From NCBI GenBank assembly GCA_004431415.1, contig QPMI01000107.1:62001-126000 (forward strand): a stretch of 64,000 bases of DNA, written 5' to 3'. Each line of letters starts with the position of its first letter. The first letter of the stretch is position 1. The stretch is from Cyanophora paradoxa CCMP329. Its lineage: Eukaryota > Plantae > Glaucophyta. A model generated the notes under the pieces. The model was not told where the DNA came from and made no database searches. It saw nothing but the letters and a program-made list of their open reading frames with translations. Made by a program: the position numbers and the translations under genes. Of this stretch, positions 18,690 through 64,000 are shown piece after piece.

Positions 18690-18774
18690 TCCAATTGCCT
18701 GTGGCGCTTGCGCTCGTGCACGCTGGAGCAACGCGGAAGCTGCATGGCCAGTTGTTACTCGCGAAAATGCGTAT
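16540..18774. repeat. Left arm (distal part) of large inverted duplication
   Basis: Reverse complement of ~27745-30292. Confidence 0.9.
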
Positions 18775-24437: not shown

Positions 24438-24785
24438 GTACTTTAGGCGGCCTAGCGGGCCACCCTGTGCTCCTCCGGTCACGGCATGTATGACATGAAT
24501 CGTCGGGCTCATCACGCGCGTTTAGGCGCACTTGGTCCGGCAGATATACCGCCACTTGGTGAGGCGCTAGATTGCATTTTTCGAAAATGTGTTACTGCCC
24601 ATTCCTGGTCAACCCGACGGGACCCGGATCTCCCGGAACATGTCTCCGGACTCCTAAGGACATGTCTTGCTAGGATCCGGCGAGAAAACCCGGGTTTTGG
24701 GAGGTCGGGACATTTCATTTTGGCCTAGGGTGGGCACCCGAACACCCCCAAGTGGGGGAAGGGGAAGGGGGTCCTTCCCCAATAA
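24438..24785. repeat. Dispersed diverged repeat, copy 2 (partner at 20911-21304)
   Basis: See copy 1. Confidence 0.65.
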
Positions 24786-25054
24786 GAGTAATAGTATCAG
24801 CTTCTGGAATGCCCGGTATTAACTTGGCCTTCGCGGCCCGCTTTATAGCTAGCTAACTGTAGTGAATTGTGGACGGCAAAATGTCAAAAATGTCAAAATC
24901 GGCAAACGCTTTGGCCCGGCCCCGAGTTCGAATCCCAAAATTTTATCGCCGGCCTCGCTCGTCGCGAATTTTCGCTCTCGCTCTTCCGTATTTTCTGTAT
25001 TTCTGTAGTGTATGTGCTCGAGTGTGGTTTTCAAGAAGGACAGGGATGCAAGGC

Positions 25055-26020: not shown

Positions 26021-26508
26021 CGCGCGAGGCGGGTCGCGCAGCGGCAGGGCGGGGCGGGCGGGGCATGATGTGCCTAGATAGCGCGCTATACAGCTGTACT
26101 ACGGTAGGCCATCGGCTCCGGATCCAGTGAGCAACTACCGCAGTATCACGAGCGCGCGCGGCTAGGCTAGGACGAAAGCACTTCTCTGAAGCTTTTGCAT
26201 GTCTTCTGACGGGCTAGCTTGCGCGGAGCGACACGTTGTAGGGCGATCGTACTCGCGCCACTTCCCCGGCGCCGCTACCTTGCGCTGTCGTCGCTTCGTA
26301 ACAAGTCCCAAGGCTCGCCGGTACCAAGGCAGCATCGTAACACAGTCCCAAGGCTCGCCGCTGCTTGCAGCCGCGGCTGAGCCGCCACGGGCCGGGTACG
26401 CAACCGCCTGTTATCTAGAGGTTAACTAGGGAGTCCCGGTTAACTAGTCGCTAACTAGGCTCTAGCTAGCGAATTTCTCTAGCGAATCTCTAGCTAGTGG
26501 TCCCTGTG

Positions 26509-26811
26509 TATGCATAAGATCGCCGAGACGCCCAGAGGCCAGTCGTTGCTGCGGCCGGATCTGTAACAGCTAGCGGCTCTATCTGCCGACTTGTATCGCG
26601 TGTGAGTCGGCGCTGGTGAGCTGCAGGAGTGGTGACCGGCGGCGCGAGGGCTGCGGGGCGGAGGCACGAATCATCGGGAACGGGCCCCGCCCGGATTCGA
26701 AGAGAGGGCAAAATGGGGTGAAATGAGCGAAGTGGGACTTGAACCCACGCCTCCGAAGAGACTGGTGCCTTAAACCAGCGCCTTAGACCGCTCGGCCATC
26801 CGCTCGATGAA
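26509..26811. repeat. Left arm (proximal part) of large inverted duplication
   Basis: Reverse complement of 27445-27747. Confidence 0.92.
26724..26805 (-). tRNA. tRNA-Leu(AAG)
   Basis: GAGCGGA acceptor stem, TGGCCGAGCGGTCTAAGGC A-box/D arm, CTGGT-TTAAGGC-ACCAG anticodon arm, long variable arm CTCTTCGGAG, GTGGG-TTCAAGT-CCCAC T arm; 82 nt. Confidence 0.95.
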
Positions 26812-27299
26812 AAAGTGGCGCAGACGCGTCTGGTCGACGCCGGGCCCGGGCAATTTGATGCGGTAGCTCAGTTTTTTTGGTGAAGGTTGAGCGGTAGCCC
26901 CGGCCACGCGCCAGGCCGGGGCGGTCAGACCGCCGCGGAGCTCGAGGGGGGCTCGTCATTGCCCGCGGCGGGGGGGAGCCTCGGAGGCGGTCGGCGCGCG
27001 GGCCCGGGGCGGCTAGCGCTGGCCATGGAAGCCCGGCGGAACGCGCCACTGGCCATATGCATATGCATGGCGCCGGCATGGAACGTTAACGTTAACCTCC
27101 GGATCCCTCCCCCCGACCGCGGCCTCGAGCTCCGAGCTCCCGACCCGGTCCCTTCCCGCCCCCTTAAATCTTCCACCGTCCCACGCCATCCCACTCCATA
27201 TACCCCTCGTCCCCCTCTTCCGAAGTTCCCCGACCAAACCTTCCCCGATATCGATATCGATACCCTGCAGCTGATCGTGATGATCATATGCATGAGCCC

Positions 27300-27380: not shown

Positions 27381-27444
27381 GCCGGCGGCGAGGTGCGCGC
27401 GAGAGGCAATGCCTGGGGTGCGGAATACGCATTCGCGCCGACCC

Positions 27445-33458: not shown

Positions 33459-36400
33459 CTAGAGCGCGATGGTGGGCACGGGCTCGACAACGCCGCCCTG
33501 CACCACTGACGAGCGCTCCGACACGTTGGAGAGCTGCCGCGCGGAAATCAGGCGGGAATTCAGGCGACGAGGCGCGGCAACGCGCACCCGCGGCGCGGGG
33601 AGGGCCTCGCCCTCGTCCGCCTCGGCGTCAACGGGCATGGCGAGCATCACGTCGCCCTCACTCACGGTCTCCGCCGTCGCGACGACCGCCGGCGTCGCCA
33701 GGGCGTTGAAGGACGGCTGGGCGCTGAGGGCCGGCGTGGCTTGGCGGATCTCGGTAGAGGCCCGCACGGAAGTCGGGTGCGAGACAGGCATGCCCTCCGA
33801 GACGTGGACGAGCTCGTGCGACGCGCGGTCCGAGCCGATCGCGTACACCTGGTCGCCGCGGTTCGTGACCGACTTGATCGCCGCTGCGGGAGGAGCGTGA
33901 GACACGAGGAAGAGGTGCAACGAGCGCAGAGAGGGCGCCCGCGCACATTTGCGGAGGTAGCGGATGCGGGCGGCGTAGGCGACTACGACGGCGACAGCGA
34001 CGAAGGCGACACCGCCGATGACAGCGCCGACAATCACGCCGATGTTCGAGGACGAGCTCGAGCGAGCGGCGTCCGCGCCGCCCGTAGCCGGCGGAACCAC
34101 GGGGACGGGGTTAGGCGCCGGGAGGGCTGCCTTAGGAATCGCGGGCGGCACGCTCTGGATGAGGGTGACGACCTGCGCGACGCATGCACAGTCAGCCCTG
34201 ACCGGAAGAAGGGCGGGCGACGGGGCGCACGTCGATCGAGTCGCATGAGCAGGAGGTGACGCTCCAGCCCAGGTCGTTCCAGTTCATGGTGCCGGTCGCG
34301 AACGACTGGCGGCCCGAGACGTACGCCTCGTCGATGACGCCGACGGGGCCGTCCGAGCCGGGGATGGTCTGGCACGACGGGCCCGTGCACTCGTACGTCG
34401 ACGAGCAGCCGGCCGACGAGAAGCCCTTCACGCTGCTGTCGTAGCGTGCGCACACGGAGACTGCGAGGGGGTCAGTTGGGCACGCGGCGCGGAGCGACTG
34501 CAGCGGAAGACGCACTGGTCGGCGCCGTGCAGACAGGGGACGGGCACTTCGAGCCGGCCGGGCACTTGATCGTGAGCGTCATGCCGCGCGTGTACGCGTT
34601 GCCCGCGTGCATGCGGCGGCCCGTCTGCAAATCGAGAGATCAGTATAGTCGAGTGTGCAAATGACCGAAGGCGGCTCACAGATTCGAGGCGGAAGAACGA
34701 GCTCGACGTCGAGTACCCGTCAAAGAGCTGGTAGCTCGTGGCCAGGCTCTCGGGGTCGATGACGACGTTGTTGTCTTGTTGCCTGCAGCAAAGCAGTCAA
34801 CAACTGAAATAAACGACTACTCGATCAATCGCAAAAGCGGACCAGCAGACGAGAGGGACCGCCTGCTTCTCGGCGACCTCAGTGCGGTCGATGCCGGTGA
34901 TCTGGTACGTGATCGAGCGGAGCATGAACTGCCCGTCGCTGCTCGACGACGTGTACACGATCGTGCCCCCGTTCACCATCACCGCTGTGGGCAGCTGGGC
35001 GCCGGGCCACAGCACGCGCTTCACGGAGACCGCGCTGGTACCCAGCATGCGCCGGCGGGGCAGGCTCAGCTGCGTCTGGATTAAGGACGGCAGCTGGGCC
35101 GTCGGCAGTGCTCCTTGAGGCTCGATGGATGCCGAAAGCGACGGCTTGATTGCCTTGAGACGGCGCGATGACGACTGGCGAAGAGCGCGGTACTCCGCAT
35201 CTGGTTCAGACCCGAGAATCGCGCGGCGCTTTGAGGCCAAGGTTCTCGTGCTTTCCAGGTCGGGCATCTTCGCGAAACCTGGGCACAAGTTAGGTCGATC
35301 TGTATCACGTAAAGAAAAGAGATATAAATTTACCATTCGGGCAGTAGCAAGTTGGCAGAGATGTTACACCGCAGTTTCCGCCTGGACAGCTGACGCGGAG
35401 CCTGAACGTGCCAGTCCCACCCTTGGCAGCAATCTTGGTTCCGTCCGCAGTCCCACCTGATCCGGAATAAGAACTTCGATTGACCTTGCAGATCAAAACA
35501 TGGTCGCCGAAACGCACCAACATCCCAGAGGCCAACGACACGATTGCCGTCCACAATACGCGAGTACATCGGGGCCTTGAAAGATGAATCAAGGCGCTGG
35601 AAGTACCAGTTCGCATTTTGCGCAGGTGTCAGTCTCGTGTACATGGTCTGATTGCCCAGAGCGCTCGGATCAAGGAAGCTGTTGTTTAACCGCGGGTCAA
35701 CTGTTACGCCTGTCGCCCACGTGTTGTACGGGGCTGTCCCGTAGAGCTCGTACGGGGTGCCAGAGAAGTTGCACTGGACGTAGGACACGAACGGGACGCC
35801 AAACGATCCCCAGTTTGTGACAGTGTAAGTGCCAGTGACATGTTGATTGACGGAGTCGACCACAGCAGTCGGCGTCGCGCCCACTCGGCACGGAACAGTT
35901 GTGCCATTGTTTTCAAAGAAACGGTTCCCGAAGCCAGGGCACGGCTGGAAAGTGCTTCCACCAGCAGTAATGTCGCAGCTCACCCAGTCATTGAAGCCGT
36001 CGTAAGTACCGCCTCGCGCGTCCTCAAAGACAAAGTGAGTGCTGTGCAATCAACCCTAATCAGCGCATGGATGCCCAAGCAGATGAGAAAAGTGCACCGA
36101 TAATAGTAAGTGTAGGAGGTGCCACCAGCACGGTTCAGATCCCAGGCGTCGTTACCAGTCAACCCCAACAGCGCCCAGTTCGGGGGCGTGATGATGACAG
36201 GATCAAACATGTCCATCGTGTACAGCGGGGGGGGATTGGTACTGTTGCGGGCCGTGAAGTCCGGAATGTAGAGCCCGTACGAGTTCGGGAAACGCGAGAA
36301 TTGGCCCCAATTATTCGGGGCCGTATTCGCAATGTCGGTAGGATTGATGACCGTGTCGTAAGTTTCGGGATCGCAATCAGTGTCCGCCTTGAGGCAGTCG

Positions 36401-39400
36401 CCCATATTGTTGTGGAAGCTGGTGCACGTGTTAAGTGAATTCTTGTTGCATTTGTAGCCGACTCGCCCATCTGGGGTAAATGTGCATTGGTCAGACTTGC
36501 AATTCGTGCGGTATATCTGCACGCCCTTGATCCCGCCATTCCTTCCTAGATTCTTGTAGCTCTCTGGAACCAGGACGCGGAACTCGTGGCGCTTGATGTT
36601 CGTGACCTTGCGGATGAGGCTGTACGTCCGAAGCGGAGTGACGTTGGGGATCTTGGGGTTCGGTCCGCACGGCCCGTAAGGATCGTCCGTGCCTCCAAGG
36701 CGGCAGCCCGTGTCGTCGGTGTCGTAGATTGCCTCCTGTGCGCTATCAGCACCTTTGTTGTCGTATAGCATACACGCAGAGCTGTGCAGCGAGATCAGTG
36801 ATCGGAATTTCGCAATCTCAAAAAGAATGACAAGCGAGGTACGCACCGCCAGTGAATGACATCCAGGGATGGAAGCTCTTCGTCGCCTCCTGACACTTCG
36901 TAGAACTGCTGCAGTTGATTGCTTGCGTCTCTGTACAGCGTGAAATCCGCTGTATTTCGACTCAATGAGGTCCACGGTGAGCAAGACCGTGCCTGGAGTC
37001 CGAAGCAGGTCTTGCGAATTGGCGAGTAGCACTGCCCGATGCCGCACCCTTCAATGTCAGCATCCGCCTCCGAACAGGGGGTGACCTTGGGGAGAATGCC
37101 GTCCTTCGCTGAACTCCAAGGGCACCGCATCCGCTTGATGATGATGCCCTTGATCTTGTCCCGAGCCGCGGCGGGTTCGTACGAGAGTGCGAACTTCATG
37201 CGGCGGTACGTCAAATTCAGCTGCAGCTCCACGAGCTTCATCGAGCACGTGTACGAAGCGAGCCTATATCGATTCTCCGCAGATCTGCTCGCGTTGCGAT
37301 AGAAGACGCTCGCGTTCATGGCGCCGATGTCGAGCCATTCGTAACCCACGAAGAGATCCGTGATGTTGACGTGGTACCAGGCCCTGCGAGACCATTAATA
37401 GAGAAATCACGTGGAACGCAAAAAGACACGCACTGGTAGCAATAGTAAACGCCAAGATTATCCGGAACCGTATCAATAAAGCTCGTCTGATTCCCTTCGA
37501 AGGAGAAGAATCTGTATTCCGTCTTCTTGGACGGGTCGGAGCAACGCCAGCGCTCAACGTAGGTGTTCATGATCTTGCTCCAGGACGGGATCCACGAAGG
37601 CGTGATTCTGACGGCTACAGTCTTCGAACCCCAGTCCGATAGCGTCGAGTTGAAGCTGACGATCGGCTGCGGCTCGATGCCATCGTAGACCATGCCCAGC
37701 GGGCCCGGCATCCCCGAGCACGTCATGTTCATCCTTCCGAACGTGACTTCAGCTCCACCTGCACAAGAGTCACTAGCCACTGAGAGAGCATAAAAGTACA
37801 GAACGCACTCGTGTTGAAGAATCCAATGTCCGAGATGGGCTGGCCTCCTGCACTGCCCGCTCCTGAGCAGTCCGTTATCTTGTACTCGGCCTGGCAAAGC
37901 GGGGCATTCGGGTTGATGCCGTTGGCCGTGAAGTTGTAGTTGGGGTCTGCAAATTTGCGGCCTCAGGAAAACGCGACCAAGAAACGGAATCAGAATTCAC
38001 GGACCAATGCTACAAGTCAGGTTGCCAGTGCGCTGCAGGCCCTGCTCCTGAAGCTTGGCCGGCGTGGTGAACGTGACTGTGAGGAAGGAATCAGTTCATA
38101 ACCCGACGAAAGGGATGGTGGCGAAAGCGCACGGTTGATCTGAATGTTCGGCGTGAGCCACGTGACTCCACTCTTCCCGGACAGTGCAGCCATTTCAGTT
38201 GTGCACGAGCTCTGCAAATGTGTACATGAGTGACTCTGAAAACATCACACTAATTCCGATTGAGCCAGACCTGGACGACACTCCTGACAATGTTGTACAG
38301 GACGTCGCAGATGTCTCCGTTGCCATCGGGCTGATCGTTCTTGTCATCGTCGTAGTCCGGAATAGGAATCTTGGACGGCGACGGCGATGGGCTCGGGCTC
38401 GGGGACGGCGAGGGCGTCGGAGTGGCCAGCACGTCGACGCGCGAGGCGCTCGACATGAACGAGTCCTTCGAGTTCGTCGAGACGAAGAAGGCCCTGCGCG
38501 GAAAGAGGTTAGGGCACGATTGAGAAGCAAGGCAAAAGCGAGCCGCGCACTTGTAGTTGTACGAGGACGGCCGCGGGACGTTCGTGTCGACGAAGGACTC
38601 TTCCGCCGCGCTCGACTTCGCGATGTTCTTGACCTGAGTGGTCGTGCAGCCCCTGCTCGACACGCACGACGAGTAACTCGACGTGTTGAATGCCGACTCG
38701 GCGCACACGCTCGTGTTGCAGTTGTCGCGGAAGACAAGCGTGCTGGCGATGACCGCCTTGAGGCCGGTATCCGTGGGATAGGTCGTGGTCACAGTGATGT
38801 CGTCCTGGTTCTCGTACGAACCCGTTCCGGCGGTCGCGTTGATACCCGGGGCGTTGAGCCGCGTCGTGGTCCCGAAGCAGCTGTTCGACGCCGGGCTCGT
38901 GGTCTCCTGATCGGGTCCGCCAGTGACAGTGACATGGTACTCGTACGTCTCCTCTGGGAACAGCCCGGTGCTGTCCGGCTTGGTGCTAACCCGAGTGAAG
39001 GAAGCGCCAGATTTGATGTAGAGCTCCCATCCGGTGCCCTTGCTCTTGGTATCCGCGGCCAGAGTCATCTTGACCGGCGTGATGCTTGAAACCGTCACGG
39101 AGCAAGTCGGCCGAGGCCACGTGCTCGCGGTGTAGATCACAGCCGAGGTCGAGACGTAGCCGTCGTCGTACGCCATGACGTACGCGAATGTGAAGCTGTA
39201 AGACACGCCGTCCGGCTGGATCGAGTTACCGGCGTATGAGCTGAGGACGATCGTCGGAGACCCGCTTGTCAGATTCGCCACCCAGTTGCCGGAGCTGTCG
39301 GTCACGTAGACGGCGGCCACATTCGGCGCCCCTGCCGCAATCGCGGCTGCAGCGTCGAGCTTGATCTTGGTCCAGGACGGAGACAAGACAGCCGCGTTTG

Positions 39401-42400
39401 AAGTGCCCGACGGCGGGAACGGCAGGTCCGGAGTGCGCAGGGAGAGCTCCGCCGAGACGTTGGAAGGATTGCCGCTCGTGTTGAACTTGGCCGTGTACGC
39501 GTACCATGTGCTCGGGCGCACAGCCGTGTCGGTCCAGGCCTGAAGCGCGCTCGTTGCATCGGCCTCGCGCACGACCACGTTGTCCCGGTAAATGGTCGCG
39601 CCAGTAATGGTCTGCGCGTTGTAGCCCAGGGCCACGTCCTGCTCCGAGTACCACACCTTGATCTCGATTGCCGTCGTCGTCGGCTCCCTGACCTTGAGCA
39701 CGACGGGCGTGGCAACCGGGACCACGATCTCGACCGGAGCCGACTCATCACCGACCGCGGTAACCACATCGTTCGGCGCAACCACGAAGACCGCCGTGTA
39801 CCTGTAGGCGACGCCCGCATCCGAGAAGCGGTTCGCGTCAACGACCGGAGGAAGTCCTCGGAGGGTCGTCACGAGCACGCCATCCCTCATCAGGCGAGTG
39901 TGCGTAATGCGGTTGTCCACGCCGTCGGACGGCAGGCTGATGCGGACGGAAATCCCGATGGGCGTCACCAACACCGGGGTGATGACCGGCTTCGGCGGGG
40001 ACGTGTCCGCCTCGCACGGATCCGAGCGGAACGAAAGCGCGCCAGTGGTCGTGTAGTCCACTGAGAACACGTACGACGAGCTCGCGTTGAGGCCGGTCAC
40101 GATTCTCTCCAAGGAGCTCGGCGCAATGGCTCCGTCCTTCGAAATAGCGCCGTCCAAGAGGAGGTCGCTCCGGAAGAGACGGAGCTTGTCCGCGAGGGTG
40201 GTGGCCACCGCGGGGATCTGGAGCGCGAGCTTCACCGTCGTGGACGTCGAGTTGACGTACGTGCACGTGGGCTTGGGGGCCGTCTTGGTCCACGCGAGCG
40301 TGAGGGGCGACATGTCGGACTCCGAGAGAAGCGTGAGGACCTTGGCGGTGTAGTTGTACGCGGTGCCCGGCAGGCGGTCCGCGTGCGTGAACGTCAACGA
40401 GACCGAGCTGTTCCGGTGCACCTCGACGGGCCCGGCATCGGTGACGAGGTAGACGACGAAGCCGGTAATCACTCCAGGCGGCGCGTACGGCGGCGAGATC
40501 ATCAGGGTGACCGAGGTCAGCGTCGCGAGAGTCGTCATCGCCGGCTCGGTGAAGTAGAGCGCCGGCGGGTTCGGGCGGCCAAGCGTCACGACAAGGTTCG
40601 AGGACCACTCCGAATCCTCGCCGAGCGTGATGGCCTTCGCCCGGTAGGTGTACGTCTGACTCGCGTTGAGCCCCGTATCCGTCGGGCACGTGTAGGTCTG
40701 CGGGATGCTAGCCGGCTCATCCTTCACGCACGACAGCTCCTTCACACCGAAGTCGCGCTGCAACAGCACCTCCGTGACTGCCGACTCGGTGCCGTCCTGC
40801 GCAAGCGTGACCTGGATGGACACCCTGTCGAGGTCCATCGACGTGTTCCTCAGGGACGGCGCCCCGGGCACGAGCGTGGTCATGGTCACGGGGTTGGAGA
40901 AGTCGCTCCTGAGGTCGCCGAGGCCGTCCGGAAGCTGCTGCACGATTCGCGCGTAGTACGTCCTCGTGTCGCCGGGCTGCAGGCTGGTCTGGTTGTGGGT
41001 GCGCACGTCCACGTCGGGGTACTCCCACTGGTACGTGGCCAACAGGGCTGCGTCGGTGTCGCTCTGCTCCTTGAGCACGCGGAGGGCAGCGCCGTTCCCT
41101 GAGGCGTCCATGTCCGTGAAGACGAACTGGAGCCACTGGGCGCCCCGCGTCCCGTTCGTGCCGATCGGCGGGGACGGGCGCGTCCACGTCCTCGTGAGGT
41201 CGGCGAGCACGGAAGGCGCGCCTTGCGTGTCGTACCGCGCAGTGTAGTTGTAGTTCGTGAACGAGTTCAGGCCGCCCGGACACTTCTGCGTGTCGCCCGA
41301 GCCCCACGCTCCGGAGACCACCGTGGACAGGGTGCCATCCGACTGGACGAGGTACAAGTACACGTTTCCGATCGTGATGCCCTCGGTCGCGGGGACGTAG
41401 ATGTTGACGCAGACCGACTGGTTCGTCGTCGGGTCACGCTTCCAAGTCACAGTGGGCTTGGGCGGGTACTGCGTCTGGACCACCACCGGATCGCCCTTCT
41501 GGCCGTTGCTGGAGTCGCTGTCGGACTTGTCCGACTTGCCTGCCGGTGAGTCGAGGACTGCGTTGCAGGAGATGACCTCGCCGGGCAGCACGGTCAAGTA
41601 GACGACGGTCACGCCGGACGGGCTGGGCGCAATCGTCTGCGTGCCAGCAGTGCCGTTGCACACGAGGATCGTCGAGTTCGTCAACGCCTTGCTGGCGTCA
41701 TTGTCGATGGTGACGGTGACCATGATGCTTGTCGAGTTCAGCGGGGTCATCTCGAGGTTGGGCGCCGCCGGCGGCAGCGTCGGATCCACCTGGCCCGTCT
41801 GGCTGGTCGTGCCTCCCTTGCCCTTGAACTCGCACACCCAGACGTACTGGACGGCGAAGTCGACCGTGTACGGCGCGCTCGAGCTCGTGAAAGTGAACTG
41901 GCCGTTCGAGACCGTGAACGTCGTGCCCGGCGTATTCTCCTCCCAGCAGACCGTGCTCGTGACCACCCCCTCCAGACCGGCTGGAAGAGGCACACTCACG
42001 GTGACCGACGGGCCCGTCGTGGTCGAAACCAGAACAGGCTGGGGCGCGGGAAGGGCGGTCCAGAGCTCCTTCGGATCAGACAGCGGCGACTTCACAACCA
42101 CGCCGTCGTTGTCAACCGTAAGCAAGGCAGTGTAGTTGTACGCGCGGCCCGCGGCGAGACCGGTGTCGTTGAAAAGCAGGCAGCACCCGCTCGGCGCGCT
42201 GCAGGGCGTGCACGTGTTCGGCAGCGTTGCGATCAGCTGGCCGTCGCGGTACAGCTCCGTGCCGTTGCTCTCCACCCACTTCTGAGGGAGCTCAATCTGG
42301 ACGCTCGTGGTCGTGGTGGTGGCCGGGTGCGGGCCCTGAGCCACCGTCGGCGATCCCGGCGGCGTCGTGATCGTGATGTTCACGCGCGTGCTCTCCATGC

Positions 42401-45400
42401 CGTCCTTGCCGATGTAGTACGCAACGTACGTGTAAGTCGTCCCAGGGGACGCGTTGTCGTCAGTGCAGTCGGTCACGCCCGGAGTCTCACCAGCCCAGGA
42501 GCTGTTCACCTTGCAGAGGAAGCCTCCAAGGACACGCTCGAGCACGAGCACTGTAATGTCGTCATCCGGAGTCGACGGCTCCACGTGCAGGATGCTCGTC
42601 GACGCGTCGCCCGAGGACGCAGTGGTGGACGAGGTGAGCGACAGGACTGGCGGGTTCGGCGAGGTCCAGGCACTGTCGGCAGTGCTGTTCGGCGAGTCCA
42701 CGCCCGGTGTCTGACTCGGCTTGCCGGCCGTGGTGTAGTCCGCCTTGTACCAGTACTCCGAGCCTGCCGCCAGGCCACTGTGAGTGTACTCGTAGGTGGC
42801 CGACGTCCTGAGAATCTCGGTGAGCTTGCTGTAGGGGCCCTCCTCCGAGGCTGCGGTGTAGATGCGGATTGCGACTGCCGCGTCCTGCTCGGGCACAGGC
42901 TTCGCCACCGTCACCTTGACGGACGTGGCATCGATGCCCTTCGCCGAGAGCGTTGGCGCCGCGGGGTCCTTAGTCTTGGCAGACAGCGACCCGTTCGGCG
43001 ACTTGGAGTAGAGCGTGATGAGGGCTGCCTCGTAGGCGAAAGTCAGGCCTGGCGGGAGACCGGAGTCCGTGAACACGAAGAAGTTGACGTTGCGCGGTGC
43101 AGCCATAGTCTGAGAGGCGGCCAGCATTCCATCGCGGTACAGATCGATCCTCGTGACGACAGGCCTGAGGTCCTCTCCAGGGATCGTGTTCACCTCGGGC
43201 GCACGGGTAGGATAGGCGACCTTGACCTTCACGACGGTCGCGGTGGGGTAGCTCGGAGAGGAGTCGACCGAGTCCAGCGTGAGGACGGGGGCAGCAGGAA
43301 TGGCCTGCGTGACCTGAAGGACGTCCGAGGTCGGCGAGTTCAGCCCCGTCGTAGTGTAGTACGCCGTGATGTTCGACGTCGTCGCCGGCTCCAGGCCCGT
43401 GAGCGTTATGCAGTCCTCGAACTCGTCCTCCTTGGGGATGGAGAACGTGAAGGGGGTGCTTGTCGGAAGGTACAGGCGGGAGAACTCCGTCGTCTTGATC
43501 TCAGCGTGGCTGAGGTTTCGCGGGTACGTCACGCAGATCTTCACGGTCGTCGCGGTGACCAGCGTGTACGAGATGGTCGGCTTCACCACCAGCAGCGCCG
43601 TCACGTGGAGCGGATCCGAGATCAGGCCCCTCTCATTGCGCTCCAAGCCGTTGTAGAAGACCAAGCCCTCGTACTGCGCCGTGTACTCGTACGTGATGCC
43701 GGGGTTGATGGCCCCGGTGCCATCAACGCACGACGCGAGCCAGTTGTCCGACGCCTCGCTGCACACTCGCGACGAGTTGCGCAACAGGAACGTCTCGGAG
43801 ACGCGGAGCTTGTTGAGGTCGGTCTCCGCGAGGTCCACCCTCAGGTCGAATTCCGTCTTGTAGCCCAGGGACAGCTGGGGCGCCGGCGGGCCGGTGCGGG
43901 CCTGCTTCGATTCGCTCTCCTTCGAGTCCGCAGGCGTCAGGTACACCGCCTTGTACCAGTAATCCGTCTGGTGCGCGCGGCCCGTGTCCACGTGGCGGTA
44001 CACCCCATCACTGTCCGCCGTCGGGACCGTCGCGACCGTCGTCCACTCACTCCCCGCCGCGCTGGACATCGCCCGGGAGATCCGCACCCCCGTCACATTC
44101 ACCACGGGGTCGAGCGTCGGCAGCTCGACCTCCAACCACACCGCCGTCGCGTTGACGGCAGTCGTCGTGAGGGTCGGCTGCGGCGAGTCGTCCGTCGTCA
44201 CCGACGCCGTGTTCGAGTCCTGCGAGGGGCCCACCCACGAGGTCGCAATCGCCCAGCACGAGTACGTCGTGCTCGGCTGCAGGGACACGAGGACCTCCTC
44301 CGCCAGGCCCATCCGCTCGATGGCCACCGTGCGCGCCGTGTTCGTGTCATTGCAGGTCAGCTGGTAGTTGTCGGCAAGCACGTTGCTCGCGTCGTGCTCG
44401 ATTTCGATGTGAACCTTGATGGTGTTCGAGTCCACCATCGTCATCGTCACGGCGGGGGCCTTCGGCGGCAGCGTCACCGCCACGTCGCCCACCTCGCTTC
44501 TCGTGCCCCTTGGCCCTCGAACACGCACTTCCACACGTACGCCGTCGCCCAGTCCACCTTGTAGCCCGTCGCGCCGTTTTCACTCGAAACGACGAACTGC
44601 GCGCCCGAGACGGTGAAGGTGACCGCCGACGCGTTGGCCAGCAGACCGTCCTCACGACGACGCTCTCGAGCCCCAGCGGCAGGGAAACGTTCACTGTCAC
44701 CGACGGGTAGTTCGTGTTCGCGTGGATGACCGGCACAGGCGCAGGCAGGGCGGTCCAGAGCTCCTTCTTCGCCGACTCCGGCGACGTGACGCGCACCCGC
44801 CATTGTCGACCGTCAGCAGCGCCGTGTAGTTGTACACATGGCCCTCGGCCAGGCCGGTGTCGTTGAATCGGAGACAGCAGCGGCTCGGATCGTCAAGGCG
44901 ATGGCACGGCCCGCAGCTCGACGGCGAGAGCGGGATCGTCACGATCGGGCTGGAGCCGGCGCCGTCGCGGTAGAGCTCCGTCCCGTTGCTCTTCTCCCAC
45001 CCCACAGGGAGCTCAATCTCCACGCTGATGGTCGAGGTCGTTGCCCGGTACGGGCCCTTGACGACCAGCGGTGCTTCTGGTGGCGTCGTCACGTTGAAGT
45101 GCGCGCGTTCGCTCGTCAGCCCCTCCTGGCCAATGTAGTGCGCCGTGTACGTGTACAAAGTCGCGGGCCTCGCCCCTGCGTCCACGCACGTGGCCGTGCC
45201 GCCCACCCCGCCCAACCATCCGATCGGGTTCGGCGCCGAGCAGCTGAAGCTGAAGCTGTCGCGCGACACCACCAAGCCGGTGACGGAGCTGTTCGCCACC
45301 GACGGCGCCATGTGCAGGCTGACAGTGACCGCGCTGGAGCCCGTCACCGTGGCCGAGTTCAGGCTGAACGCCGGCGGCGACGGCGCGGTCCACGCCCCGT

Positions 45401-54400: not shown

Positions 54401-57400
54401 AACTCCGTCGTCTTAATCTCAGCGTGGCTGAGGTTTCGCGGGTACGTCACGCAGATCTTCGCGGTCGTCGCGGTGACCAGCGTGTACGAGATGGTCGGCT
54501 TCACCACCAGCAGCGCCGTCACGTGGAGCGGATCCGAGATCAGGCCCCTCTCATTGCGCTCCAAGCCGTTGTAGAAGACCAAGCCCTCGTACTGCGCCGT
54601 GTACTCGTACGTGATGCCGGGGTTGATGGCCCCGGTGCCGTCAACGCACGACGCGAGCCAGTTGTCCGACGCCTCGCTGCACACTCGCGACGAGTTGCGC
54701 AACAGGAACGTCTCGGAGACGCGGAGCTTGTTGAGGTCGGTCTCCGCGAGGTCCACCCTCAGGTCGAATTCCGTCTTGTAGCCCAGGGACAGCTGGGGCG
54801 CCGGCGGCCGGTGCGGGCCTGCTTCGATTCGCTCTCCTTCGAGTCCGCAGGCGTCAGGTACACCGCCTTGTACCAGTAATCCGTCTGGTGCGCGCGGCCC
54901 GTGTCCACGTGGCGGTACACTCCGTCGCTGTCCGCCGTCGGGACCATCGCGACCGTCGTCCACTCACTCCCCGCCGCGCTGGACATCGCCGGGAGATCCG
55001 CACCCCCGTCACATTCACCACGGGGTCGAGCGTCGGCAGCTCGACCTCCAACCACACCGCCGTCGCGTTGACGGCAGTCGTCGTGAGGGTCGGCTGCGGC
55101 GAGTCGTCCGTTGTCGCCGACGCCGTGTTCGAGTCCTGCGAGGGGCCCACCCACGAGGTCGCAATCGCCCAGCACGAGTACGTCGTGCTCGGCTGCAGGG
55201 ACACGAGGACCTCCTCCGCCAGGCCCATCCGCTCGATGGCCACCGTGCGCGCCGTGTTCGTGTCATTGCAGGTCAGCTGGTAGTTGTCGGCGAGCACGTT
55301 GCTCGCGTCGTGCTCGATTTCGATGTGAACCTTGATGGTGTTCGAGTCCACCATCGTCATCGTCACGGCGGGGGCCTTCGGCGGCAGCGTCACCGCCACG
55401 TCGCCCACCTCGCTTCTCGTGCCCCCTTGGCCCTCGAACACGCACTTCCACACGTACGCCGTCGCCCAGTCCACCTTGTAGCCCGTCGCGCCGTTTTCAC
55501 TCGAAACGACGAACTGCGCGCCCGAGACGGTGAAGGTGACCGCCGACGCGTTGGCCCAGCAGACCGTCCTCACGACGACGCTCTCGAGCCCCAGCGGCAG
55601 GGAAACGTTCACCGTTACCGACGGGTAGTTCGTGTTCGCGTGGGTGACCGGCACAGGCGCAGGCAGGGCGGTCCAGAGCTCCTTCTTCGCCGACTCCGGC
55701 GACGTGACGCGCACCCCGCCATTGTCGACCGTCAGCAGCGCCGTGTAGTTGTACGCGCGGCCCTCGGCCAGGCCGGTGTCGTTGAATCGGAGACAGCAGC
55801 GGCTCGGATCGTCAAGGCGATGGCACGGCCCGCAGCTCGACGGCGAGAGCGGGATCGTCACGATCGGGCTGGAGCCGGCGCCGTCGCGGTAGAGCTCCGT
55901 CCCGTTGCTCTTCTCCCACCCCACAGGGAGCTCAATCTCCACGCTGATGGTCGAGGTCGTTGCCCGGTACGGGCCCTTGACGACCAGCGGTGCTTCTGGT
56001 GGCGTCGTCACGTTGAAGTGCGCGCGTTCGCTCGTCAGCCCCTCCTGGCCAATGTAGTGCGCCGTGTACGTGTACAAAGTCGCGGGCCTCGCCCCTGCGT
56101 CCACGCACGTGGCCGTGCCGCCCACCCCGCCCAACCATCCGATCGGGCTCGGCGCCGAGCAGCTGAAGCTGAAGCTGTCGCGCGACACCACCAAGCCGGT
56201 GACGGAGCTGTTCGCCACCGACGGCGCCATGTGCAGGCTGACAGTGACCGCGCTGGAGCCCGTCACCGTGGCCGAATTCAGGCTGAACGCCGGCGGCGAC
56301 GGCGCGGTCCACGCCCCGTCCGCATCGCTCAGATCCGAGTCCTTCCCGGCGATCCCGTCCGGCTCGCCGGACGTCGTGTAGTCCGCCTTGTACCAGTACT
56401 GCGTCCCCGCCACGCGAGCCGTGTCGGTGTACACGTAGTGGCCCTCCGGCTCCGGCTTGCTGTTGATCTCCGCGATCTCCTGGTACGTCCCGTCGACCGA
56501 CGGCGCGCGGTAGATGCGGATCGTCACTGCCGCCGCCTGCTCCGGCACCGGGCGGTCCACCACCAGCGTGATCGCCGACGTGTTGCGGTCGATGCCCGTC
56601 GCCGTGATCTTGGGCTTGGCGGCGATGTCCGTCTCCGCCAGTGCCGACCCGTTCGGGGAGTTCGTGTACAGCGTGAACAGCGTCGCCTGGTAGAAGTAGA
56701 GCAGGCCAGGGGCGAGCTCGTCGTCGATGAACTCGTACGTGTTCAACGTGCTGACTGCGCCCTGCGAGCCAACGAGCGAGCCGTTGCGATACAGGTCGAT
56801 CCGCTTGATGACCGGCAGGAGGTCCTCGGCCGGGCTGGTCTGCATCTCCGGGTCCGCAGGCTCATTCCGGTACACCACCTGGACCTTCACCGCCGTCGCG
56901 TTCGGGTAGGCCGGCTCGAAGCTCACATACAGCTTCGGCGCTGCCGGGCTCGCCTGCGTCACCTGGAGGACGTCCGAGGTCGGCGAGTTCAGCCCCGTCG
57001 TAGTGTAGTACGCCGTGATGTTCGACGTCGTCGCCGGCTCCAGGCCCGTGAGCGTTATGCAGTCCTCGAACTCGTCCTCCTTGGGGATGGAGAACGTGTA
57101 GGGGGTGCTTGTCGGAAGGTACAGGCGGGAGAACTCCGTCGTCTTGATCTCAGCGTGGCTGAGGTTTCGCGGGTACGTCACGCAGATCTTCGCGGTCGTC
57201 GCGGTGACCAGCGTGTACGAGATGGTCGGCTTCACCACCAGCAGCGCCGTCACGTGGAGCGGATCCGAGATCAGGCCCCTCTCATTGCGCTCCAAGCCGT
57301 TGTAGAAGACCAAGCCCTCGTACTGCGCCGTGTACTCGTACGTGATGCCGGGGTTGATGGCCCCGGTGCCATCAACGCACGACGCGAGCCAGTTGTCCGA

Positions 57401-60400
57401 CGCCTCGCTGCACACTCGCGACGAGTTGCGCAACAGGAACGTCTCGGAGACGCGGAGCTTGTTCAGGTCGGTCTCCGCGAGGTCCACCCTCAGGTCGAAT
57501 TCCGTCTTGTAGCCCAGGGACAGCTGGGGCGCCGGCGGGCCGGTGCGGGCCTGCTTCGATTCGCTCTCCTTCGAGTCCGCAGGCGTCAGGTACACCGCCT
57601 TGTACCAGTAATCCGTCTGGTGCGCGCGGCCCGTGTCCACGTGGCGGTACACTCCGTCGCTGTCCGCCGTCGGGACCATCGCGACCGTCGTCCACTCACT
57701 CCCCGCCGCGCTGGACATCGCCCGGGAGATCCGCACCCCCGTCACATTCACCACGGGGTCGAGCGTCGGCAGCTCGACCTCCAACCACACCGCCGTCGCG
57801 TTGACGGCAGTCGTCGTGAGGGTCGGCTGCGGCGAGTCGTCCGTCGTCACCGACGCCGTGTCCGAGTCCTGCGAGGGGCCCACCCACGAGGTCGCAATCG
57901 CCCAGCACGAGTACGTCGTGCTCGGCTGCAGGGACACGAGGACCTCCTCCGCCAGGCCCATCCGCTCGATGGCCACCGTGCGCGCCGTGTTCGTGTCATT
58001 GCAGGTCAGCTGGTAGTTGTCGGCGAGCACGTTGCTCGCGTCGTGCTCGATTTCGATGTGAACCTTGATGGTGTTCGAGTCCACCATCGTCATCGTCACG
58101 ACGGGGGCCTTCGGCGGCAGCGTCACCGCCACGTCGCCCACCTCGCTTCTCGTGCCCCCTTGGCCCTCGAACACGCACTTCCACACGTACGCCGTCGCCC
58201 AGTCCACCTTGTAGCCCGTCGCGCCGTCTTCACTCGAAACGACGAACTGCGCGCCCGAGACGGTGAAGGTGACCGCCGACGCGTTGGCCCAGCAGACCGT
58301 CCTCACGACGACGCTCTCGAGCCCCAGCGGCAGGGAAACGTTCACCGTTACCGACGGGTAGTTCGTGTTCGCGTGGGTGACCGGCACAGGCGCAGGCAGG
58401 GCGGTCCAGAGCTCCTTCTTCGCCGACTCTGGCGACGTGACGCGCACCCCGCCATTGTCGACCGTCAGCAGCGCCGTGTAGTTGTACGCGCGGCCCTCGG
58501 CCAGGCCGGTGTCGTTGAATCGGAGACAGCAGCGGCTCGCATCGTCAAGGCGATGGCACGGCCCGCAGCTCGACGGCGAGAGCGGGATCGTCACGATCGG
58601 GCTGGAGCCGGCGCCGTCGCGGTAGAGCTCCGTCCCGTTGCTCTTCTCCCAGCCCACAGGGAGCTCAATCTCCACGCTGATGGTCGAGGTCGTCGCCCGG
58701 TACGGGCCCTTGACGACCAGCGGTGCTTCTGGTGGCGTCGTCACGTTGAAGTGCGCGCGCTCGCTCGTCAGCCCCTCCTGGCCAATGTAGTGCGCCGTGT
58801 ACGTGTACAAAGTCGCGGGCCTCGCCCCTGTGTCCACGCACGTGGCCGTGCCGCCCACCCCGCCCAACCATCCGATCGGGTTCGGCGCCGAGCAGCTGAA
58901 GCTGAAGCTGTCGCGCGACACCACCAAGCCGGTGACGGAGCTGTTCGCCACCGACGGCGCCATGTGCAGGCTGACAGTGACCGCACTGGAGCCCGTCACC
59001 GTGGCCGAATTCAGGCTGAACGCCGGCGGCGACGGCGCGGTCCACGCCCCGTCCGCATCGCTCAGATCCGAGTCCTTCCCGGCGATCCCGTCCGGCTCGC
59101 CGGACGTCGTGTAGTCCGCCTTGTACCAGTACTGCGTCCCCGCCACGCGAGCCGTGTCGGTGTACACGTAGTGGCCCTCCGGCTCCGGCTTGCTGTTGAT
59201 CTCCGCGATCTCCTGGTACGTCCCGTCGACCGACGGCGCGCGGTAGATGCGAATCGTCACTGCCGCCGCCTGCTCCGGCACCGGGCGGTCCACCACCAGC
59301 GTGATCGCCGACGTGTTGCGGTCGATGCCCGTCGCCGTGATCTTGGGTCTGGCGGCGATGTCCGTCTCCGCCAGTGCCGACCCGTTCGGGGAGTTCGTGT
59401 ACAGCGTGAACAGCGTCGCCTGGTAGAAGTAGAGCAGGCCAGGGGCGAGCTCGTCGTCGATGAACTCGTACGTGTCCAACGTGCTGACTGCGCCCTGCGA
59501 GCCAACGAGCGAGCCGTTGCGATACAGGTCGATCCGCTTGATGACCGGCAGGAGGTCCTCGGCCGGGCTGGTCTGCATCTCCGGGTCCGCAGGCTCATTC
59601 CGGTACACCACCTGGACCTTCACCGCCGTCGCGTTCGGGTAGGCCGGCTCGAAGCTCACATACAGCTTCGGCGCTGCCGGGCTCGCCTGCGTCACCTGGA
59701 GGACGTCCGAGGTCGGCGAGTTCAGCCCCGTCGTAGTGTAGTACGCCGTGATGTTCGACTTCGTCGCCGGCTCCAGGCCCGTGAGCGTTATGCAGTCCTC
59801 GAACTCGTCCTCCTTGGGGATGGAGAACGTGTAGGGGGTGCTTGTCGGAAGGTACAGGCGGGAGAACTCCGTCGTCTTAATCTCAGCGTGGCTGAGGTTT
59901 CGCGGGTACGTCACGCAGATCTTCGCGGTCGTCGCGGTGACCAGCGTGTACGAGATGGTCGGCTTCACCACCAGCAGCGCCGTCACGTGGAGCGGATCCG
60001 AGATCAGGCCCCTCTCATTGCGCTCCAAGCCGTTGTAGAAGACCAAGCCCTCGTACTGTGCCGTGTACTCGTACGTGATGCCGGGGTTGATGGCCCCGGT
60101 GCCGTCAACGCACGACGCGAGCCAGTTGTCCGACGCCTCGCTGCACACTCGCGACGAGTTGCGCAACAGGAACGTCTCGGAGACGCGGAGCTTGTTGAGG
60201 TCGGTCTCCGCGAGGTCCACCCTCAGGTCGAATTCCGTCTTGTAGCCCAGGGACAGCTGGGGCGCCGGCGGGCCGGTGCGGGCCTGCTTCGATTCGCTCT
60301 CCTTCGAGTCCGCAGGCGTCAGATACACCGCCTTGTACCAGTAATCCGTCTGGTGCGCGCGGCCCGCGTCCACGTGGCGGTACACCCCATCGCTGTCCGC

Positions 60401-63400
60401 CGTCGGGACCGTCGCGACCGTCGTCCACTCACTCCCCGCCGCGCTGGACATCGCCCGGGAGATCCGCACCCCCGTCACATTCACCACGGGGTCGAGCGTC
60501 GGCAGCGCGACCTCCAACCACACCGCCGTCGCGTTGACGGCAGTCGTCGTGAGGGTCGGCTGCGGCGAGTCGTCCGTCGTCACCGACGCCGTGTCCGAGT
60601 CCTGCGAGGGGCCCACCCACGAGGTCGCAATCGCCCAGCACGAGTACGTCGTGCTCGGCTGCAGGGACACGAGGACCTCCTCCGCCAGGCCCATCCGCTC
60701 GATGGCCACCGTGCGCGCCGTGTTCGTGTCATTGCAGGTCAGCTGGTAGTTGTCGGCGAGCACGTTGCTCGCGTCGTGCTCGATTTCGATGTGAACCTTG
60801 ATGGTGTTCGAGTCCACCATCGTCATCGTCACGACGGGGCCTTCGGCGGCAGCGTCACCGCCACGTCGCCCACCTCGCTTCTCGTGCCCCCTTGGCCCTC
60901 GAACACGCACTTCCACACGTACGCCGTCGCCCAGTCCACCTTGTAGCCCGTCGCGCCGTCTTCACTCGAAACGACGAACTGCGCGCCCGAGACGGTGAAG
61001 GTGACCGCCGACGCGTTGGCCCAGCAGACCGTCCTCACGACGACGCTCTCGAGCCCCAGCGGCAGGGAAACGTTCACCGTCACCGACGGGTAGTTCGTGC
61101 TCGCGTGGATGACCGGCACAGGCGCAGGCAGGGCGGTCCAGAGCTCCTTCTTCGCCGACTCTGGCGACGTGACGCGCACCCCGCCATTGTCGACCGTCAG
61201 CAGCGCCGTGTAGTTGTACGCGCGGCCCTCGGCCAGGCCGGTGTCGTTGAATCGGAGACAGCAGCGGCTCGCATCGTCAAGGCGATGGCACGGCCCGCAG
61301 CTCGACGGCGAGAGCGGGATCGTCACGATCGGGCTGGAGCCGGCGCCGTCGCGGTAGAGCTCCGTCCCGTTGCTCTTCTCCCAGCCCACAGGGAGCTCAA
61401 TCTCCACGCTGATGGTCGAGGTCGTCGCCCGGTACGGGCCCTTGACGACCAGCGGTGCTTCTGGTGGCGTCGTCACGTTGAAGTGCGCGCGCTCGCTCGT
61501 CAGCCCCTCCTGGCCAATGTAGTGCGCCGTGTACGTGTACAAAGTCGCGGGCCTCGCCCCTGTGTCCACGCACGTGGCCGTGCCGCCCACCCCGCCCAAC
61601 CATCCGATCGGGTTCGGCGCCGAGCAGCTGAAGCTGAAGCTGTCGCGCGACACCACCAAGCCGGTGACGGAGCTGTTCGCCACCGACGGCGCCATGTGCA
61701 GGCTGACAGTGACCGCACTGGAGCCCGTCACCGTGGCCGAATTCAGGCTGAACGCCGGCGGCGACGGCGCGGTCCACGCCCCGTCCGCATCGCTCAGATC
61801 CGAGTCCTTCCCGGCGATCCCGTCCGGCTCGCCGGACGTCGTGTAGTCCGCCTTGTACCAGTACTGCGTCCCCGCCACGCGAGCCGTGTCGGTGTACACG
61901 TAGTCACCCTCCGGCTCCGGCTTGCTGTTGATCTCCGCGATCTCCTGGTACGTCCCGTCGACCGACGGCGCGCGGTAGATGCGAATCGTCACTGCCGCCG
62001 CCTGCTCCGGCACCGGGCGGTCCACCACCAGCGTGATCGCCGACGTGTTGCGGTCGATGCCCGTCGCCGTGATCTTGGGTCTGGCGGCGATGTCCGTCTC
62101 CGCCAGTGCCGACCCGTTCGGGGAGTTCGTGTACAGCGTGAACAGCGTCGCCTGGTAGTAGTAGAGCAGGCCAGGGGCGAGCTCGTCGTCGATGAACTCG
62201 TACGTGTTCAACGTGCTGACTGCGCCCTGCGAGCCAACGAGCGAGCCGTTGCGATACAGGTCGATCCGCTTGATGACCGGCAGGAGGTCCTCGGCCGGGC
62301 TGGTCTGCATCTCCGGGTCCGCAGGCTCGTTCCTGTACACCACCTGGACCTTCACCGCCGTCGCGTTCGGGTAGGCCGGCTCGAAGCTCACATACAGCTT
62401 CGGCGCTGCCGGGCTCGCCTGCGTCACCTGGAGGACGTCCGAGGTCGGCGAGTTCAGCCCCGTCGTAGTGTAGTACGCCGTGATGTTCGACGTCGTCGCC
62501 GGCTCCAGGCCCGTGAGCATTATGCAGTCCTCGAACTCGTCCTCCTTGGGGATGGAGAACGTGTTGGGGGTGCTTGTCGGAAGGTACAGGCGGGAGAACT
62601 CCGTCGTCTTGATCTCAGCGTGGCTGAGGTTTCGCGGGTACGTCACACAGATCTTCGCGGTCGTCGCGGTGACCAGCGTGTACGAGATGGTCGGCTTCAC
62701 CACCAGCAGCGCCGTCACGTGGAGCGGATCCGAGATCAGGCCCCTCTCATTGCGCTCCAAGCCGTTGTAGAAGACCAAGCCCTCGTACTGTGCCGTGTAC
62801 TCGTACGTGATGCCGGGGTTGATGGCCCCGGTGCCATCAACGCACGACGCGAGCCAGTTGTCCGACGCCTCGCTGCACACTCGCGACGAGTTGCGCAACA
62901 GGAACGTCTCGGAGACGCGGAGCTTGTTCAGGTCGGTCTCCGCGAGGTCCACCCTCAGGTCGAATTCCGTCTTGTAGCCCAGGGACAGCTGGGGCGCCGG
63001 CGGGCCGGTGCGGGCCTGCTTTGATTCGCTCTCCTTCGAGTCCGCAGGCGTCAGGTACACCGCCTTGTACCAGTAATCCGTCTGGTGCGCGCGGCCCGCG
63101 TCCACGTGGCGGTACACCCCATCGCTGTCCGCCGTCGGGACCATCGCGACCGTCGTCCACTCACTCCCCGCCGCGCTGGACATCGCCCGGGAGATCCGCA
63201 CCCCCGTCACATTCACCACGGGGTCGAGCGTCGGCAGCTCGACCTCCAACCACACCGCCGTCGCGTTGACGGCAGTCGTCGTGAGGGTCGGCCGCGGCGA
63301 GTCGTCCGTCGTCGCCGACGCCGTGTTCGAGTCCTGCGAGTCGCCCGCCGACGACGTCGTCTTCGCCCAGCACGAGTACGTGGTGCTCGGCTGCAGGGCA

Positions 63401-64000
63401 GTGATGGTCACCGTTGACGGCCCAGTCAGCTCGATGTCCATCGTGCGCGCCGTGCTCGTGTCGTTGCAGGTCAGTCGGTAGTCGGTGGAGAGCTGCTTGC
63501 TTCGGATGTGATTCAGGATGTCGACTGTGACGGTGATGTTGTTCGAGTCCGCCATCGCCATGGTCACAACGGGGGCCTTCGGCGGCAGTGTGACCGTGAC
63601 TGCTCCTGATGCACTGGTCGTGCCTCCCTTTCCATCAAAAACACACGTGTATGAGTAGACTCCCATGTAGTCCACAGTGGTCTTTGTCTCCACAATAACT
63701 TCATCCAACACTATTGCATGTGTTGTTGTTTGCATGGTGACTTCGTCTGTGCGAGTACAGCGTGTTGCGGTTACCACGTCCCTTGTGTAGTCACTTGGCA
63801 GAGGGACACTGATGTTTACAGAAGGGTCGGCTGATTTGCTAGCCACATAGGGAGTGGGAGCGTCGACAGCGGTCCAGGCAATAATGCTGACTGATGGCTC
63901 TGATTCTACGATCACTCCCCCGGTCCTAACAGAGCGTCGCATTGCTGCTCCAAGCATTGTCGGCATAATGAGCTTCGCGTAATACTCGTATGGTGTCCCT
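33459..64000 (-). CDS. Giant single-pass (type I) cell-surface protein: tandem FN3-like domains, PS linker, Cys-rich region, GPS-like motif, TM helix, cytoplasmic tail (5' end beyond window)
   Basis: ORFs of 2094, 1633, 2020 and 1045 aa with ~100-aa P..P.L..TS.TV/DTGL.PG..Y.Y FN3-like modules. The frame is open to the window end (GTPYEYYAKL). The region below 38551 is spliced. TM IGVIVGAVIGGVAFVAVAVVVAYAA followed by RIRYLRK at ~33950-34045; stop at 33459. Confidence 0.88.
43310..63350. repeat. Intragenic tandem repeat, 2733-bp (911-codon) unit, ~7.3 near-identical copies
   Basis: The TDDSP(Q/R)PTLTTTAVNAT anchor recurs near 63300, 60570, 57840, 55105, 52380, 49645, 46920 and 44190. Spacing such as 55263 to 57996 is 2733 bp. 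Confidence 0.97.

Follow-up and report, generated by a model that had tools for sequence, protein, structure and literature searches.

A giant FN3-repeat gene of Cyanophora paradoxa with the predicted layout of a membrane-anchored stalk

Here, we propose that a giant gene of the glaucophyte Cyanophora paradoxa CCMP329, lying on the minus strand of a 64,000-nucleotide stretch of its genome (GenBank assembly GCA_004431415.1, contig QPMI01000107.1, positions 62,001 to 126,000; hereafter the window, whose own numbering we use throughout), encodes a type I membrane glycoprotein, built of FN3 modules, that would serve as a long spacer or tether and hold a distal head off the membrane. We give this reading slightly more credence than doubt. 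The gene itself is real and spliced, and it is split into fragments in the public annotation, where the models tig00000431_g687 and g689 are pieces of it (g689 matches the window at 100% over 60820-55019 and 52785-48304). An earlier interpretation from the DNA letters alone (hereafter the sequence-only reading) had described a titin-like giant cell-surface protein made of nine-module super-repeats.

With the introns removed and single-base deletions filled from sister copies, the frame is open throughout and encodes 9,881 amino acids (aa; 1.057 MDa) within the window, in keeping with the ~10,000 aa and >1 MDa of the sequence-only reading, which had called for such splicing and correction. This joined model was used in scripts only, for counting and local comparison; searches and folds used single exons or the stored protein of a paralogue. 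The chain opens with ~85 FN3 modules; after these come a Cys-rich neck, then a GPS-like domain, a single transmembrane (TM) helix and a 129-aa tail (Table 1). The N-terminus of the protein lies beyond position 64000, outside the window. A self-built hidden Markov model (HMM) finds 82 modules, which with two module-sized gaps and one cut module makes 84-85, in agreement with the about 85 of the sequence-only reading. The TM helix and cytoplasmic tail foreseen at the C-terminal end are also present in the spliced model, but the last ~1,370 aa are not FN3, being instead the Cys-rich neck and GPS-like domain. A TM helix near the C-terminus, positive charges after it and a sequon-rich ectodomain are the features of a type I single-pass protein, and this layout supports the prediction of a type I membrane glycoprotein. 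Homologue and Pfam searches placed the protein in no named family, just as none had been recognised from the letters.

In the 33-64 kb region, 2,733 bp is the dominant k-mer distance, and the minus strand repeats the nine module starts of the sequence-only reading in their given order (with variant letters in some copies), which bears out a 911-aa unit of nine distinct modules. Seven full units, starting at 63297, 60565, 57832, 55099, 52371, 49638 and 46912, are 98.5-99.2% identical to unit 2, taken as the reference; a partial unit stands at the window's right edge, and an eighth unit is diverged (76% identical overall), with its first three modules within the homogenised array and its last six outside it. 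The homogenised array, at 7 units plus 3 modules, comprises 66 modules. Within a unit the nine modules are mutually just 14-33% identical, and the Pro fraction is 0.07. The predicted richness in sequons is evident (17 of 35 Asn per unit, with 7.3 expected; p=2.6e-4), and the predicted pairing of Cys holds for six of the nine modules (0, 2, 2, 0, 0, 2, 4, 2 and 2 Cys from M1 to M9) but not for M1, M4 and M5, which have none. The sequon excess, the paired Cys and the charge after the helix together would place the chain outside the cell. Long plus-strand open reading frames (ORFs) that overlie the array were rejected as antisense shadows of a coding frame whose GC content at third codon positions (GC3) is 0.92.

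Do the modules have the fold that their sequence suggested? An AlphaFold model of one unit, computed from a 20-row alignment of units and relatives, shows nine seven-stranded sandwiches at a mean predicted local distance difference test score (pLDDT) of 83.7, with a predicted template-modelling score (pTM) of 0.39, that is, with no fixed packing between domains. The top ranks in Foldseek are thick-filament structures, a bacterial GhpA stalk, contactin, cytokine receptors and ROS1, and the top VIA-align matches are nearly all FN3 chains at Z 12-16 (the rows cover mainly residues 1-404), the best being fibronectin FN7-9 (Z 16.1) and, for a single FN3 domain, Z 13.3 with a root-mean-square deviation of 2.0 Å over 94 aa. 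Moreover, one HMM matches all nine modules. The model and these matches support an FN3 fold, and so uphold the earlier description of the modules as FN3-like beta-sandwiches. The Pfam check proposed at the same time was less clear-cut: it does return the fn3 family, but window ORFs score 21.8-23 bits against a gathering score of 25 (M9 being the only module to match singly), while three relatives pass that score at 25.2, 29.9 and 36.7 bits. PDB sequence searches with the unit gave nothing significant, and Pfam matches of the unit to DUF2808, Peroxidase_2 and SWM were rejected as summed weak repeats.

Expression was judged from contigs of three runs taken as RNA and one DNA run, on 5,951 letters. 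Fifteen of the 16 GT-AG introns are spliced out in contigs of all three RNA runs and retained in the DNA run; the sixteenth (34461-34515) was deduced from matching loose ends. In one RNA contig, of 6,485 nt, the long FN3 exon runs on into the exons of the neck, with zero mismatches in the listed pieces; as these take in the part where the paralogue differs, it is the window gene itself that is transcribed; judged by its length, this contig should reach ~41.9 kb. The RNA runs contain 0.80-0.85 of the words of 34000-43400, where the ceiling for spliced RNA is 0.87. Thus, of the RNA evidence that the sequence-only reading had asked for, transcription and splicing are seen over the C-terminal 10 kb, contigs being unable to show transcription through the near-identical array. 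At 37602-37619, 33741-33760, 38706-38710 and 39201-39208, read contigs from some runs differ from the assembly at full depth; these clusters may be local consensus errors, strain differences or paralogue contigs.

Table 1. Features of the giant gene in the window, with evidence or remarks
Feature	Position	Strand	Evidence or remark
Giant gene, in-window part (9,881 aa after correction)	33459..64000	-	5' end beyond 64000
Cut module and two non-homogenised FN3 modules (M8-, M9-like)	63298..64000	-	GC3 0.44-0.62 in first 150 codons
Seven nine-module units, 2,733 bp / 911 aa each	44184..63297	-	k-mer period and alignment
Clean reference unit, modules M1-M9 of 94-112 aa	57833..60565	-	seven-strand FN3 sandwich each in AlphaFold model
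Last three homogenised modules (M1-M3), end of concerted array	43296..44183	-	
Diverged M4-M9	41463..43295	-	35-61% to array modules, 92-98% to paralogue g677
About 10 non-repeat FN3-like modules, including first intron 38494-38550	38429..41462	-	93-100% identical to paralogue
Pro-Ser repeat hinge and acidic linker	38322..38428	-	
Cys-rich neck, ~850 aa, 32 Cys, 17 sequons	35264..38321	-	no Pfam match; most paralogue-divergent part
Basic Cys-free linker, 75 aa, with KRRAIL, RRLK and RRRML motifs; candidate processing sites	35037..35263	-	
GPS/GAIN-like membrane-proximal domain (putative), 220 aa, 10 Cys	34151..35036	-	motif pattern and Atlas
Pro/Ala/Ser-rich juxtamembrane linker	34044..34148	-	
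Single TM helix, Arg/Lys after	33965..34043	-	hydropathy
129-aa low-complexity cytoplasmic tail over three exons, ending TAG 33461-33459	33459..33962	-	
16 GT-AG introns, 50-65 nt	33534..38550	-	RNA contig joints
Introns 1-8 by coordinate	33534-33587, 33884-33946, 34173-34230, 34461-34515, 34625-34679, 34783-34842, 35279-35333, 35457-35517	-	
Introns 9-16 by coordinate	36042-36097, 36782-36846, 37384-37433, 37759-37808, 37947-38004, 38077-38132, 38212-38270, 38494-38550	-	

The gene extends beyond the window. Two gene numbers above g689 is tig00000431_g691 (1,303 aa, 12 modules), which breaks off within a module, at a motif that would be completed by the opening codons of the window, and therefore probably continues the window gene, adding its 12 modules; the protein would then have at least 11,200 aa and ~97 modules. 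Model g691 contains a second nine-module repeat of 904 aa, ~30% identical to that of the window and 97% self-identical in the repeated part. The short models tig00000431_g693 and tig00000470_g1175, 75-91% identical to the unit and apparently frameshifted, seem to be a further array copy upstream on the contig and a copy on another contig, respectively.

For the paralogue we took g677, on the same contig, and compared the C-terminal 5,035 aa. The two genes are 92-100% identical from M4 of the last unit through the non-repeat flank. In the arrays their identity drops to 40-80% per module (66% per unit), although the units of any one gene agree with each other at ~99%, and the change comes abruptly at the M3/M4 boundary. 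Each gene therefore homogenises its own array. GC3 follows paralogue identity (rho 0.82, from windows that are not independent): the array stands at 0.92, the flank common to both genes at 0.82-0.95, the divergent neck at 0.63-0.77 and the unhomogenised head at ~0.5. This pattern fits GC-biased gene conversion, both inside each array and between the flanks of the two paralogues, though the genes may instead have duplicated recently, with arrays that turn over fast.

All strong homologues are C. paradoxa proteins, and homologue and metagenome searches found none outside this species apart from one generic FN3-rich protein (E 5e-11), the metagenome scan itself giving no relatives. Homologue searches with the C-terminal 960 aa and with g691, both limited by a length filter, added nothing new. 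Within C. paradoxa, the same ordered modules occur beside LamG, subtilase, Kelch or PKD/TIG/TRP-like parts at other loci, so the stalk is a mobile spacer. We also noted other giant genes that carry these ordered modules and are split in the annotation (tig00000269_g23717-g23725, tig00021282_g19944-g19947 and tig00021504_g21967-g21968), in combination with subtilase, LamG, Kelch, or PKD/TIG/ephrin-like/TRP-like multi-pass ends. Unit length ranges across arrays from ~830 to 926 aa; g21967 has 30 modules with a period of ~830 aa, and in g23718 the M1-M2 pair occurs three times in succession, breaking the nine-module period. By these comparisons the period of nine is old but not strict. The ratio of non-synonymous to synonymous substitution rates (dN/dS) between diverged units, ~0.57, indicates weak constraint.

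At the membrane, the protein has a base of another kind. The TM helix has a mean hydropathy of 2.9, the next-best windows being the same helix. Just before it is a GPS-like Cys pattern with a long (~50-residue) insert, and in the Atlas GPS-family clusters make up 22 of the 30 named matches of the 220-aa domain (best 0.92, at a low recognition score). For the neck and the GPS-like part, Pfam gave nothing, whether single exons or the paralogue's stored protein were searched, with no GPS/GAIN match at E up to 10; a PDB sequence search with the neck-proximal GPS-like domain gave nothing significant, and its single-sequence fold, made without an alignment, has a pLDDT of 28.5. Self-cleavage of a GPS requires a His-Leu-Thr/Ser triad (PMC4810088), at the position of which both paralogues have Ser-Ile-Asp; judged by its residues, this is a GPS-like domain without those for self-cleavage. 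Farther from the membrane, the only two RRL/RRxL matches in the 9,881 aa both fall in the basic linker, where KRRAIL and RRRML are kept in the paralogue. As candidates for processing, these RRxL-like motifs resemble secretory-pathway subtilase sites. Pfam on the window found no REJ, Ig, kinase or RTX domain, the tail has no recognisable catalytic or signalling domain, and a C-terminal VxPx ciliary motif was rejected because it is not kept in the paralogue. A neck stretch of ~250 aa, at about 35570-36380 on the minus strand, is transcribed in the window gene and missing from the model of g677, a difference that is either a real insertion or an annotation gap in g677.

In light of this base, might the protein be a mechano- or chemosensory receptor in the style of polycystin-1 or the adhesion G protein-coupled receptors (GPCRs), in which the GPS-like domain would pass the effect of force or ligand on the stalk to the tail or a partner channel? 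We hold this to be unlikely. The Atlas matches and the Cys pattern directly before the helix speak for it, as does a relative with the same modules that has PKD and TIG domains and ends in a multi-pass TRP-like region; no similarity was found, comparing the two, between the base of the window protein and that relative's ectodomain. The tail is well conserved between the two paralogues, which may merely reflect gene conversion, and it has nothing recognisable for signalling; Pfam does not see a GPS, and the cleavage triad is replaced. Polycystin-1 and the adhesion GPCRs have a long ectodomain that ends at the membrane in a GPS Cys motif, which the GPS-like pattern here resembles, and the C. paradoxa relatives with PKD and TRP-like parts add to the likeness, but they have 11 or 7 TM helices as opposed to one and, in place of an FN3 stalk, PKD repeats (PMC4810088). 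Membership of that family was rejected by the features tested, namely the one TM helix and the lack of the His-Leu-Thr/Ser triad.

A second option, and one that we consider distinctly unlikely, is that the chain is a true ruler or scaffold, each unit (~32-35 nm) docking a partner and the number of units setting the length of a composite filament. Consistent with this, the nine-module period is found in at least four separately homogenised arrays (911, 926, 904 and ~830 aa), with position-specific Cys patterns, and there is a precedent in Chlamydomonas MST3 (8,572 aa, 42 repeats), proposed to set mastigoneme length (PMC11015965). The titin C-zone, for its part, has a super-repeat of 11 domains and ~43 nm (PMC10665226), and the two proteins share a giant FN3 chain in super-repeats in which same-position domains are most alike, the top Foldseek matches being cardiac thick-filament structures. 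However, unequal crossing-over perpetuates a nine-module period without any function, and array units diverge more between paralogues than the flanks do. The triplicated M1-M2 pair, the ~10% difference in unit length between arrays and the weak constraint on diverged units argue against a lattice-matching role for the period. The comparison with titin and the molecular ruler made by the sequence-only reading thus survives as geometry only. Titin is intracellular, mixes Ig with FN3, has a kinase and consists of old, diverged repeats, whereas the window protein is membrane-anchored, sequon- and Cys-rich and purely FN3, with units 99% identical; PDB sequence searches found no homology between them, and the titin family was rejected on the TM helix, the lack of an Ig or kinase Pfam match and the lack of a titin sequence match.

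MST3 is a poly-hydroxyproline axis coated by MST1 (PMC11015965). Like these, the window protein is a giant of repeats made by an alga, linked to a membrane and long enough to span a flagellar hair; unlike MST3, it is a folded FN3 chain with 7% Pro in the unit, and no homology was found. An MST3-type axis was rejected on that Pro content and on the single TM helix, as opposed to poly-proline and a PKD2-like membrane domain.

We return, then, to the tether. Since the protein has neither a signalling domain on its inner side nor a working GPS site, it is most simply read as a structural tether or an adhesin-like filament, and in favour of this the relatives pair the same modules with typical extracellular domains. 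In this proposal, the extracellular FN3 chain would be N-glycosylated and disulfide-stiffened, and its 85 in-window modules, at 3.5-3.9 nm each, would form a thin beaded filament of ~300-330 nm (340-380 nm with the 12 modules of g691), the lower spacing being that of fibronectin and the upper that of the titin C-zone. A binding head at the N-terminus, outside the window, would be kept at a distance from the plasma membrane or from that of the flagellum. As the GPS-like domain lacks the means to cleave itself, we infer that a secretory-pathway subtilase may cut the basic linker, leading to shedding or to a two-chain form. Sequence patterns suggest that stalk length would change by unequal crossing-over in steps of nine modules, that GC-biased conversion would homogenise the array within the gene and the flanks between paralogues, and that the period of nine would be a self-perpetuating duplication unit, not a ruler mark.

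By analogy, the protein may work like the giant stalked adhesins of bacteria, its closest functional analogues. The Marinomonas RTX adhesin has 1.5 MDa and >130 domains (PMC5550230), and it and Aureispira GhpA (structure matches 9flp and 9fly) share with the window protein a size above 1 MDa and a long beta-sandwich extender. They differ in their prokaryotic secretion and anchoring and, in the RTX adhesins, in their Ca-stiffened Ig-like repeats, whereas the window gene is eukaryotic and spliced and encodes a TM anchor, sequons and a nine-module higher-order repeat; an RTX or type I-secreted adhesin was rejected on the spliceosomal introns and TM helix and for want of an RTX Pfam match. Among animal proteins, ROS1/Sevenless, the receptor phosphatases and the contactins have extracellular FN3 chains, mostly with one TM helix, and appear among the structural matches, and usherin is another FN3-rich single-pass protein. 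They have several-fold fewer FN3 domains, no homogenised super-repeat and, in several cases, an internal kinase or phosphatase.

Where might such a tether stand? Cyanophora has no cell wall (PMC6212826), and C. paradoxa carries long narrow and short flat mastigonemes (PMC6704402), of which the long, narrow flagellar hair, visible by deep-etch electron microscopy, would be the most concrete candidate structure. We therefore raise the idea, which we consider rather unlikely as it stands, that these hairs are single molecules or small bundles of the FN3-chain family, with lengths set by unit number and with paralogues sharing anchor and flanks. In the literature consulted on C. paradoxa flagellar hairs, no protein had been assigned to them.

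The same topology would also suit a structural protein that is lumenal or secreted and belongs to mucocysts, alveoli or mucilage. It would first sit in an internal membrane and, after cleavage in the basic linker with its candidate processing sites, be released as a fibre. Cyanophora does have mucocysts and alveolar cisternae, but no material was seen inside the alveoli by deep-etch microscopy (PMC6212826), and we consider this placement improbable.

The assembly itself deserves comment. It was made from PacBio reads with Canu and Quiver, followed by majority-rule Illumina correction (PMC6704402). Seventeen frameshifts, spread over 14 alignment columns, all lie inside the array and are confined to units 1, 4, 6 and 7 (units 2, 3 and 5 are clean); every one is a single-base deletion in a G/C run. 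Between 44579 and the stop, over 10.2 kb of coding sequence, there are none. Runs of 3+ G/C make up only 10% of the unit and runs of 2+ only 31%, so the deletions are probably assembly errors, in the pattern that long-read error leaves behind wherever short reads have no unique place. The array copies differ by 69 substitutions, 32 synonymous and 37 non-synonymous (omega ~0.41, p=1.3e-4), with no stop and an excess of synonymous changes. Of the 69 variable sites, 45 recur in at least two copies, and among 990 informative pairs the four-gamete test fails for 456. The copies are therefore distinct coding sequences, and the mosaic suggests exchange between them. That the locus is decaying, with real frameshifts, or that the assembler inflated the array, for which the 17 frameshifts, an average insert (~15 kb) shorter than the 21-kb array and a copy number judged from the assembly might be cited, is very improbable given this distribution of deletions and substitutions, the spliced RNA and the paralogue's own array.

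Several points nonetheless weigh against the tether. Majority-rule Illumina polishing could scramble variants among copies, so the mosaic may be partly artefact, and we infer the transcription through the array, the artefact status of the 17 deletions and the copy number. The signal peptide and the head are predictions that would lie beyond 64000, and the GPS-like assignment comes from a motif and a language-model lead. The RRxL-like motifs are presumably imperfect matches to known subtilase sites, and in the literature consulted on Cyanophora hairs we found no hair length.

Elsewhere in the window, a large inverted duplication (16788-18774 / 27745-29739 and 26505-26829 / 27427-27751; 869 nt at 100%, further arms at 88-100%) surrounds two head-to-head tRNA-Leu(AAG) genes at 26724-26805 (minus strand) and 27451-27532 (plus strand). 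Some 7.7 kb at 18775-26504, present only in the left arm, contain tandem arrays with periods of 40, 172, 117 and 140 bp. At 10761-12161 on the minus strand is a 1,3-beta-glucan synthase component (Pfam E 5e-20), whose gene probably extends to ~15.4 kb.

Long beta-sandwich stalks on membrane anchors are already familiar from bacterial adhesins and from smaller animal receptors, but a single-pass protein of a eukaryote that sets ~100 FN3 domains in a homogenised higher-order repeat appears to be undescribed, our literature search having found no paper on such a protein. Concerted evolution of coding DNA clearly works on two tiers at this locus, with arrays homogenised within a gene, flanks between genes and GC3 tracking both. 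For the flagellar hairs or surface fibres of glaucophytes, there is now a candidate that has a name and can be tested. If the hair proposal is true, the Cyanophora flagellar hair would be built differently from those of Chlamydomonas and the stramenopiles, and its paralogues would share anchor and flanks through gene conversion, yet each would homogenise its stalk privately.

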